A stretch of DNA of 64,000 bases, from the NCBI RefSeq assembly GCF_964204645.1, contig NC_134030.1, positions 8,351,122-8,415,121 of the forward strand, written 5' to 3'. A program made the position numbers and the translations under genes. Below, piece by piece: positions 47,958 through 50,900 of the stretch (positions are counted from its first letter, which is position 1; the number at the start of each line of letters is the position of its first letter). The DNA comes from Tubulanus polymorphus. Taxonomy: Eukaryota; Animalia; Nemertea. The notes beneath the pieces are model-generated. The model searched no databases. It saw only the letters and a program-made list of their open reading frames with translations, and had not been told where the DNA came from.

Positions 47958-50900
47958 TCAGCATTTCAACAATCCGCTCTGTGGAACACTGATGCTCACC
48001 TATAGAAGTAAGAAAGTAAAAATGAGTGACTTGATTCATTCCAAAAGTTATTCAATCCTGTAAGAAAGTTATGCGTCTATCCATACGGCTTTAATCATAG
48101 TCAATTTAGGAAATTAAATACAGCAGACTTCGCTCAAGTCGGATCCCTTTGGACTGTCTAAAAATGTGTCCGACTTGAGTGACATCCGAGTTATGTATTT
48201 CATATAGTGTCACAAAAAATATTCATAAAAACATCCGAGTCGATCGGATCTGACTTGAGCTGAGACTACATCGAGTTTGTTAGAGCTTACTGATTTCACT
48301 TCGCAGTATTCATGGACGCCTTCTTTGCCACTGATGAAACAAAAGGAAATACAAGTTTATGACCAAATGACGAGAGCACGAATTTAAGTAAAAACAATTG
48401 ATACGGATACGTACTATTCGCGACCAATTCCAGATTGTTTGTAGCCACCAAACGGCAACCCGAGCCCGCTACCACTACTTAGCGAGTTTACACTGAAATT
48501 AGAGAAAATAGATATTTGATTCACTTCGATGGGTGCAACAACAAGGTTGCTTCTTACACGGCGGTTCAAAAATGTCAAATGATGAACCAGATCATATAAA
48601 ACTATACGCACCTGTAAACTGAATAATTAAGAGGAATAGGACTGAAATTGCGGATTTATGAATTTGATTTTGGTGAATATTGGAGGAGGTTATCTTTGAG
48701 AGTAGTGCAAAAGGATAAGAAAGTAACAAGACATTGATTAGATATCACGTTGTTTTATTGAACTGATGATATGAAGCATTGGAGTTGACAAAAGCAGGAT
48801 TCATCACGTATGTTGATTGATATTAGTATCCATCTCAATCTTTATTCGTTCGTTGTTTCTCTATTTGCTGCAGCACAGTTCATCCTTCGGGAACGAGATG
48901 CTGACCTAAAGTAAAACGAATTACTAAGTGAGCTTTAAAAACTATTGTAGCTGAATTATTCTCTTATTTCCTGTGTCTTAACGATTATTTACCGATTTGA
49001 CTTCGCAATACTCTGTTACGCCTTCAAATCCACTGAAATTACGAATGGATATTCATTGATGTCGAAGTTTAAGAAATGGCTAAAGTATCCTACGATCTGA
49101 ATACGGCAAAAACTTCTATTTCACGGTACTCACTAGTCTCGCGCATTGCCCGATTGTTTGTAACCACCGAAAGGTAAGCCCATTTCGTCAGCGCCCAGAT
49201 GGTTTATGCTATGAAAAGGAGAATGGACAGCGGTCATGGTCGCCGAAATCTGAATCGACTTCGCACATGAATTAGGCTAATTTTTTTCTCCTTTCTGTTG
49301 AGCTTAAAAGTTGACCTGGCCGGCTGCCTATCTACCCTGTACATTACTTTTTTTTAAAAATCATGATCAAGTTAACCATAACAAAACCGGCAGCTACAGA
49401 TTTGAACTGATTATAAATGTTATTGCGGTTTACAAAAGAACCCGGTCTTTTACGAGCAACTATCATTTTTTAGTGCTATTCTCAGATCCAAGAGTGCATT
49501 GAATAGTGTCGAAAAAATCAAGAGGGAGATGGTATGGAGGAACAGTACATCTGATAGTGCATTGGTGTGTTGAAAATCAGGCGCAAAATCTTGAAGGAGG
49601 TGATCATTGGGGATTAGATATACTTACTTGATAGTTCCAGCTTGTAGCCTGTTGGACACGTATATAGCCGTGTTAATGTCCTTGGTAAATACAAACGCAG
49701 CCAGACCATAATCTGTGTCATTAGCACGTCTGATCACCTCATCGATGGTGCTGAACTTGAAAATACTCTGAACTGGCCCGAATATCTGTCGACATATTGA
49801 TTCAAATTGTCATATTCTGCTCTTACAATCATCAATTTCTTTATTTCGATTTGCTTTTAATTACCTCCTCTTTGGCAATGCGCATGTGATCTTGAACATC
49901 ACTGAATACTGTTGGCTCAACGAAATAACCTTTGTTACAGAGTCGATTCCCGCCGATCTCCAGTTTTGCACCTTCTTTCTTTCCGGACTCAATAAGGTCT
50001 ATTACTTTATCAAACTGTACTTTGCTCACCTGTTGGGACAGAAGAAGATCACACATATCGCGGTGTGAGAAATGAAGGTGAAAATGGCTGGCCACGTTGA
50101 GGTATTTCGAATTGTACCTGTGGTCCCATTTGAGTTTTTTCGTCAAACGGATCGCCAACTACTCGGTTCTTGGCATATTCTACAGTTTTTGCGACAAACT
50201 TATCGTAGATGCTTTCGTGAACGAAAGTTCTCGTTGGAGCGCAACAAACTTGTCCTGTGTTATACATAGCTCCTTCGTGAGCTTGGCAAACGCAGGCATC
50301 AACTGTGAAATTTGTTAAATGTGTATGTGAGGTAATGCCTTGTATACTAATATGCCAGAAAATTGTTTTTGTACACAATCATTTGCGGGACTCCACTTAC
50401 GGTCGAAATCTGGGAACACAATAAGCGGACTCTTTCCACCGAGTTCTAGGGCTACTCGTTTGAGGTTTGTTTCACTAGATGCTTGCTGAATCTTTCGTCC
50501 AACCTATGATAAATCGAAAGAATAATCCTCTTTTAGTGCCTTTAAATATATCTCATTTAGAAATGCAGCAAAGGAAGAGTCTTTATTCATCGATGATTAT
50601 CATGATGCTCCACTTACGATAGTGGATCCGGTAAACGAAACCTTATTGATGTCATGGTGATGGGTAAGAGCTGATCCCGCAGTCGGACCAAATCCAGGAA
50701 TAATGTTAATGACACCCGGTGGGAATCCAGCCTGAAAAAAGTTTAAAAGATACATATACTGCCGTAATAGTTTTGTTTACTTACATACCAGACATTCTAG
50801 CAATAGAGCACGTCTAGACCTGAAGGAAGTTAAATTGATAAGGGTTGACTAATCATCAGTCTGGTCACGAAATATGACCTGATTTCAGTCACAAGAGTAC

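Follow-up and report, generated by a model that had tools for sequence, protein, structure and literature searches.

An aldehyde dehydrogenase (ALDH) gene of the nemertean Tubulanus polymorphus very probably uses two alternative three-exon endings and so makes two enzymes, unlike in the neck of the substrate entry channel and in the tail. The gene was studied in a stretch of 64,000 nucleotides (nt) of contig NC_134030.1 (positions 8,351,122 to 8,415,121; RefSeq assembly GCF_964204645.1), a part of the 268-Mb genome that is hereafter called the window and whose first letter is position 1 in all coordinates unless another contig or the chromosome is named. It is an ALDH1/2-family gene on the minus strand, with a coding sequence at 53756-47958 and 14 exons per mRNA, and every intron is bounded by GT-AG and keeps the frame. 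Eleven shared exons are followed by either cassette A (exons 12A, 13A and 14A) or cassette B (exons 12B, 13B and 14B), and each combination encodes exactly 497 amino acids, of which 444 are common and the last 53 are swapped. The initial annotation of the window had proposed this arrangement from the letters alone; all of its coordinates, GT-AG sites, phases and stop codons for the cassettes, as well as the protein length, were reproduced (Table 1).

Four runs of one study and one other run contain this stretch, and the data sets X2-X5 were mapped on positions 47210-51700. X2 consists of assembled contigs from one run of one sample, and each 31-letter word of a contig has to occur in real reads; the joints seen in the contigs are therefore not assembly chimeras. 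X2 behaves as RNA: its contigs skip each intron at the GT-AG borders, have depths in the thousands and show no letters differing from the window. X3 and X4 resemble low-depth DNA, and X5 is without any match.

Both splice paths that leave exon 11 were found in X2. The joint between exons 11 and 12A (49628 to 49208) lies in a 567-nt contig with a depth of 3174 that spans exons 11, 12A, 13A and 14A together with 3' flanking sequence, and the 12A-13A and 13A-14A joints are likewise present. The joint between exons 11 and 12B (49628 to 48492) has a depth of 1898. Further into cassette B, the 13B-14B joint has a depth of 3249, and the 12B-13B joint appears as matching loose contig ends at 48415 and 48330. 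The contig depths in X2 are 6100-12250 for the shared exons and 22 for a contig that runs from exon 11 into the unspliced intron 11. Given the joint depths and those of the shared exons, both splice paths are abundant; contig depth gives no ratio, and the share of B is put at a substantial minority or more. That the C-terminal modules are chosen by alternative splicing, as had been proposed, is borne out by the two joints leaving exon 11 and by the joints inside each cassette. Hybrid joints (12A-13B and 13A-14B) were not listed among the X2 contigs, which drop rare forms.

Comparison of the two cassettes revealed that they have the same phases, that every acceptor is AG and every donor GT, and that each contains one stop and no internal stop, an agreement far beyond chance. 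Upstream of both, the last two bases of exon 11 (to 49628) belong to a split codon, and the donor next to them is GTAAGT. The last 53 residues are identical at 34 positions, and two shared motif blocks (10 and 11 residues) occur in both cassettes. The C-terminal motif PFGGxKxSGxGR[ED] is present in A and B, as is EYCEVK with the equivalent of Glu487. The differences are concentrated in three elements: (i) the loop right after exon 11, which reads HLGADEMG in A and SLSSGSGLG in B, where it is one residue longer, (ii) the GxGRE element, which reads NARD in A and IGRE in B, and (iii) the final nine or ten residues, which are almost wholly unlike, B ending in VPQSGLLKC, and which include cysteines near the end of both tails. 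In the motif of cassette A, Ala replaces the second Gly and Asp replaces Glu; Asp at this place is also found in the solved PuuC/KauB enzymes.

In DNA, the cassettes are 63% identical over the aligned codons. The proportion of synonymous differences (pS) is 0.78, which is saturated, so that a synonymous distance (dS) is not computable, and the nonsynonymous distance (dN) is 0.305, i.e. dN/dS is far below 1. When drift was simulated, the fraction of neutral copies with the open frame and the five splice dinucleotides still intact was below 0.4% at 0.4 substitutions per site and about 0.01% or less from 0.8 substitutions per site onwards; the survivors had far fewer identical residues than A and B. 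The simulation ignored insertions and deletions and is therefore conservative. Since the silent sites are saturated, dN is 0.305 and drift so rarely leaves an intact copy, purifying selection must have acted on both cassettes during most of their history. The earlier proposal of an old duplication under purifying selection agrees with these values.

Apart from one remnant of the duplication, only exons 12 and 13 and a few bases beside them are still similar in DNA between A and B, with 70-74% identity and a spacing of 702-719 nt. The remnant, of 37 nt, was found in intronic sequence, where 48758-48794 matches 49402-49438 with 73% identity. Similarity that survives only at these exons and in the remnant, with this spacing, is what an old tandem duplication would leave; the duplicated segment, ~700 nt long, would have carried the last three exons. 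Against 123 other ALDH1/2 tails, the mean number of identical residues among the 53 is 19.4 for A and 22.1 for B, compared with 34 for the A-B pair. A and B are closer to each other than either is to any of the 123 tails, and the duplication therefore took place within the gene's own lineage.

Only one other ALDH1/2-type gene is present in the genome, an ALDH2-like gene located on the same chromosome at 6305094-6306590, 2.1 Mb away. It encodes a presequence (~40 extra N-terminal residues) and an ordinary tail ending in IPQKNS, and has a single intron versus 13 in the studied gene; it may descend from a retrocopy. Neither cassette derives from this gene.

The studied locus is single copy in the genome, except for a dispersed repeat of 155 nt in intron 13B that resembles a miniature inverted-repeat transposable element (MITE). 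At least 39 other copies of the repeat, with 74-83% identity, are spread over many chromosomes. Intron 13B (291 nt) is longer than intron 13A (87 nt) mainly because of this repeat. Within intron 11, depth spikes (617-12700) were observed at 49326-49358 in all three runs, and many loose contig ends begin there, which suggests that a further dispersed repeat has its edge in this intron, ahead of exon 12A.

The following pathway from gene to enzymes is proposed. An ancient tandem duplication would have copied a segment of ~700 nt with the last three exons, and the two copies are both used in RNA. The exon 11 donor is joined either to exon 12A, followed by 13A, 14A and the A stop, or to exon 12B with the whole A cassette skipped, followed by 13B, 14B and the B stop. 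Each mRNA would then be translated to an enzyme with the same catalytic core and its own last 53 residues. The choice of the ending would depend on competition between the 12A and 12B acceptors and on cleavage at AATAAA after cassette A. Two such hexamers lie 3' of the A stop, in agreement with the initial annotation, which had assigned A its own AATAAA signals; as putative signals, they make the polyadenylation half of the proposed switch plausible. A search for inverted RNA pairing able to loop out cassette A gave only short matches at chance level. For the other ending, an X2 contig over 47999-47840 carries 24 extra letters that are off the genome, and TATAAA is found at 47850-47845; the 3' end of B may lie near 47840, after this hexamer.

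The exchanged exons encode a part of the enzyme that faces the substrate. Three positions are regarded as channel signatures of these enzymes, 124 at the mouth, 459 at the neck and 303 at the bottom, and small mouth residues widen the channel (PMC8160307). The neck is Phe in ALDH2 and Val or Leu in ALDH1; the bottom is Cys in ALDH2 and one of Thr, Ile and Val in ALDH1 (PMC8160307). In the T. polymorphus gene, the mouth Ala and the bottom Cys are encoded in shared exons, and the neck is encoded in the swapped exon 12. Exon 4 aligns without gaps to ALDH2 105-145, which places Ala at mouth position 124. Residues 9-25 of exon 12B align to human ALDH2 460-476, and residues 4-24 of exon 12A align to human ALDH1A1 457-477 (ALDH2 numbering plus one). 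At neck position 459, A has an Asp that precedes a Glu, and B has either Ser or Gly, depending on the placement of the extra residue. The swapped loop lies between Asn454 and Pro464 and lines the substrate entry channel, and a 20-residue block common to both endings comprises the conserved C-terminal motif and a strand of the oligomerisation domain. The resulting signatures (Ala124, Cys303, and Asp or Ser/Gly 459) match neither the ALDH1 nor the ALDH2 pattern (PMC8160307).

Among solved structures, the A loop is matched best by PuuC, a gamma-glutamyl-gamma-aminobutyraldehyde dehydrogenase (4lih; E-value 0.004), and by KauB-type enzymes (E-value ~0.01). The D/E-M element and SGNxRD are common to the A loop and these enzymes. 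Because of this resemblance to the bacterial PuuC/KauB enzymes, the A loop weakly hints that isoform A may prefer positively charged amino-aldehydes. If both endings do give enzymes, a real difference in substrate range between the two isoforms is possible, its chances lying between somewhat below even and even. A more specific proposal, put forward tentatively and somewhat doubtful, is that one gene re-tools the channel neck via its two endings, of which A bears Asp/Glu and B is rich in Ser/Gly and longer by one residue, one core serving two substrate classes, e.g. cationic amino-aldehydes and neutral aldehydes. As the two endings have the same oligomerisation strand, mixed A/B tetramers would be possible under this proposal.

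Several observations weigh against two working enzymes from one gene. The RNA support consists of contigs from one run of one sample, without isoform ratios, 3' ends or tissues, and the two proteins are predicted from DNA and RNA. One X2 contig runs unbroken from 48903 to 48484, past both AATAAA hexamers and 9 nt into exon 12B, where it stops, so that in at least some transcripts with cassette A no cleavage directly follows A. These transcripts may be precursors, products of low-level read-through, or mRNAs with the B exons in the 3' untranslated region (UTR). Owing to the stop codon at the end of cassette A, the product of a read-through mRNA would still be isoform A. Cassette A is farther than B from the other ALDHs in 121 of the 123 comparisons and departs from the consensus by NARD in place of GxGRE; of the two copies, A is therefore the more derived, B being closer to the family. 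The E-values that tie the A loop to amino-aldehyde enzymes are weak and were obtained with a 24-residue query. In a related ALDH locus on a metagenome contig from ENA, with exons 65-71% identical and with the same intron positions and phase, one exon 12 was found within ~29 kb downstream of exon 11, and exons 13 and 14 were not found, so that this locus carries little weight.

Two of these points, the unbroken contig from 14A through to 12B and the stronger departure of A from the family consensus, would suit an explanation in which only one cassette yields a working protein. The other splice path would then be regulated-unproductive or noise, for instance A transcripts that read through into the B exons, with exon junctions far 3' of the A stop, and are degraded. 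We regard this as improbable: open frames, splice sites and the family motif are kept in both cassettes despite saturated silent sites, which drift would not allow, and the joints from exon 11 have depths in the thousands, as compared with 22 for unspliced intron 11. Hardly credible is the explanation that a separate, truncated paralogue further downstream left cassette B behind, or that the duplication is an artefact of the assembly, both of which the initial annotation had named as ways in which its proposal could fail. The tandem arrangement is the only point in their favour. Exon 12B is spliced straight to exon 11 of the studied gene, and the tblastn search with the ALDH2-like paralogue found no other ALDH pieces in the window. 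Furthermore, copies with 63% identity in aligned codons are not collapsed haplotypes, an RNA contig bridges the stretch from 14A to the 12B acceptor, and the DNA is single copy in the genome. On these grounds both the artefact and the truncated paralogue were rejected.

A further alternative accepts that both cassettes are spliced and places the difference between the isoforms in subunit assembly, stability, redox regulation or localisation, via the final residues. The last nine or ten residues are almost wholly different, and cysteines are located near both ends, as this alternative would have it. An alternative C-terminal tail of ALDH3A2 alters the destination of the protein, not its chemistry (PMC5450235), and the C-terminal tails of some ALDHs reach the entrance of the neighbouring subunit (PMC8160307). 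Nevertheless, we consider it rather unlikely, since no targeting signal was recognised in either tail when judged by eye, the oligomerisation strand is identical in A and B, and the differences form their largest block in the entry-channel loop. Two used endings that differ in the channel neck and in the tail thus constitute the interpretation that we prefer.

To place this interpretation among other ALDH genes, we consider the searches for relatives and the published cases of alternative exons. A search of representatives with exon 9 returned exon-sized fragments only, at 72% identity or less, and a few generic full-length ALDHs, and a search with the open frame of exon 12B gave no match. When a profile of a full-length scaffold protein and the gene's exons was used, relatives of the scaffold dominated, and the best full-length protein was ~60% identical. 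The open frame of exon 10 was too conserved to single out relatives, and every tail seen in that search was of the ordinary VWVN...PFGG type. A scan of metagenomes with exon 11 gave 80 loci, each with one ordinary tail that is B-like and not A-like. Comparisons of the isoforms of the ALDH clusters of Ptychodera and Branchiostoma showed no alternative C-terminal cassette; the Ptychodera isoforms X1, X2 and X4 differ at the N-terminus only. Full-text literature searches found no relevant case of an ALDH gene whose terminal exons are duplicated or alternative. On the related ENA contig, open frames with integrase (rve, a weak match) and type-B DNA polymerase (DNA_pol_B_2) domains were observed 3' of exon 12, at 16649-17158 and 20124-20543 of that contig, which suggests a Polinton/Maverick-like element in or after that ALDH gene.

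Tandem-duplicated alternative exons are well known in general, and an ALDH gene with a duplicated three-exon ending is an addition to that kind. A familiar example of tandem-duplicated mutually exclusive exons is PKM1/PKM2. Two studies describe tandem-duplicated exon substitutions as rare, mostly ancient and highly expressed (PMC9741552, PMC8373072). The T. polymorphus cassettes resemble such substitutions in that homologous tandem exons of the same phase and near-equal length, which are old, constrained and expressed, swap one structural element. Unlike them, they form a three-exon block at the end of the gene, each with its own stop and 3' UTR. For this reason the upstream A block can end the mRNA, and no device against joint in-frame inclusion of the two blocks is needed.

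Among detoxification enzymes, the Anopheles GSTD1 gene has four alternative 3' exons, the modules being single exons. In Drosophila, alternative splicing of GSTD11, GSTZ2, GSTT3 and GSTO2 leads to several isoenzymes (PMC4195677). As in these insect genes, one detoxification-enzyme gene would give isoenzymes with one part common and another different; the enzyme family is another one, and three-exon blocks are exchanged here in place of the single-exon modules of Anopheles. Within the ALDH superfamily itself, the alternative tails of ALDH3A2 (FALDH) are, to our knowledge, not homologous copies. The endoplasmic reticulum and peroxisomal splice variants of this enzyme differ in the membrane-anchor tail, which changes their destination (PMC5450235). 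ALDH3A2 and the studied gene have in common that splicing alters only the C-terminal end; however, the ALDH3A2 variants alter the anchor tail and the destination, not the channel, and the studied gene encodes no membrane anchor.

The closest counterpart in the exchanged region is the split between ALDH1 and ALDH2, paralogues that, in the work of Sobreira et al. (2011) to the extent that it is summarised in PMC8160307, differ at the channel signatures. In both cases the forms differ at these signatures, and the neck position 459 belongs to the region swapped here. In contrast to that split, in which whole genes were duplicated, only the last three exons were duplicated within one gene, and the neck is of neither type. 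If the proposal is true, the gene is an exon-level counterpart of the ALDH1/ALDH2 split made elsewhere by whole-gene duplication. Diversity of ALDH1/2 enzymes is thought to come from duplication of whole genes and reshaping of the channel, whereas here the same channel region would be exchanged within one gene. The two isoforms would also constitute a natural experiment: 444 residues being identical, differences in substrate range, kinetics or assembly would be assignable to the entry loop and the tail. For genome annotation, a pipeline that produces one model per gene misses one of the two enzymes.

Exons of the gene were identified by tblastn with the ALDH2-like paralogue of the same genome as a guide, refined by the RNA joints and then checked for boundaries and frame. 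In a genome search with PF00171 (Aldedh), three exons of the gene match, exons 9 and 11 scoring 65 bits each at a cut-off of 23; exons 12B and 12A, with 17 and 13 bits, fall below this cut-off in the same region of the profile. The catalytic residues Asn169 (APWNFP), Glu268 (ELGGKSP) and Cys302 (GQVCCAP) are encoded in shared exons. ALDH1A1-like and ALDH2-like proteins from several animals share 59-60% identity with the full-length model over ~485-490 residues. The gene product is predicted to be a member of the ALDH1/2 family of the cytosolic type, and a divergent one, because it is only ~60% identical to any full-length protein retrieved. The start of the protein, 14 residues directly before LFINNE, comes from the sole fitting first exon, a prediction without RNA support, and has no mitochondrial presequence. 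Exons 1-3 and the acceptor of exon 4 fall beyond the stretch used for RNA mapping, and the joint between exons 9 and 10 (50118/50029) is seen in X2 as loose contig ends only.

Table 1. Features of the ALDH gene and its two endings (window coordinates, written in the direction of transcription for the minus strand)
Feature	Position	Strand	Evidence or remark
Shared part, exons 1-11	53756..49628	-	tblastn, GT-AG and frame; RNA joints from 51573 downward
Exon 1, coding sequence	53756-53715	-	homology, frame and splice sites only
Exon 2	52720-52616	-	homology, frame and splice sites only
Exon 3	52497-52357	-	homology, frame and splice sites only
Exon 4	51702-51573	-	acceptor by homology, frame and splice site only; RNA joints from 51573 on
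Exon 5	51292-51231	-	
Exon 6	51157-51029	-	
Exon 7	50731-50618	-	
Exon 8	50503-50401	-	
Exon 9	50302-50118	-	PF00171, 65 bits
Exon 10	50029-49865	-	
Exon 11	49785-49628	-	PF00171, 65 bits
Exon 12A, 75 nt	49208-49134	-	AG/GT and frame intact; RNA joint 49628 to 49208; PF00171 positions 429-445
Exon 13A, 40 nt	49032-48993	-	AG/GT intact; RNA joints 49134 to 49032 and 48993 to 48905
Exon 14A, coding part, 45 nt	48905-48861	-	TAG stop; frame and RNA contig
AATAAA, 15 nt after the A stop	48846-48841	-	read in the sequence; putative poly(A) signal
Second AATAAA after A	48759-48754	-	read in the sequence; putative poly(A) signal
Stretch between the cassettes	48860-48493	-	3' UTR of isoform A and final part of the intron removed for B
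Exon 12B, 78 nt	48492-48415	-	AG/GT and frame intact; RNA joint 49628 to 48492; PF00171 positions 423-446
Exon 13B, 40 nt	48330-48291	-	AG/GT intact; 12B-13B as loose ends, 13B-14B joint in RNA
MITE-like dispersed repeat in intron 13B, ~155 nt	48110-48269	.	inverted arms 48125-48146 and 48246-48267
Exon 14B, coding part, 42 nt	47999-47958	-	TGA stop; frame and RNA contig

The border of exons 8 and 9 has a minor variant of splicing or assembly, a rare second joint (50302 to 50404) with a depth of 6 versus 8083 for the main joint, in which three other letters separate the two ends. A (TA)n microsatellite of ~500 bp (~250 copies; 51759-52256) takes up much of ALDH intron 3, and a shorter one is located at 46821-46854. 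The neighbouring gene, a 239-amino-acid open frame on the plus strand (56004-56723), matches the PF03151 triose-phosphate/nucleotide-sugar transporter family (69 bits) and is transcribed divergently from the ALDH gene, ~2.2 kb from the ALDH start codon.

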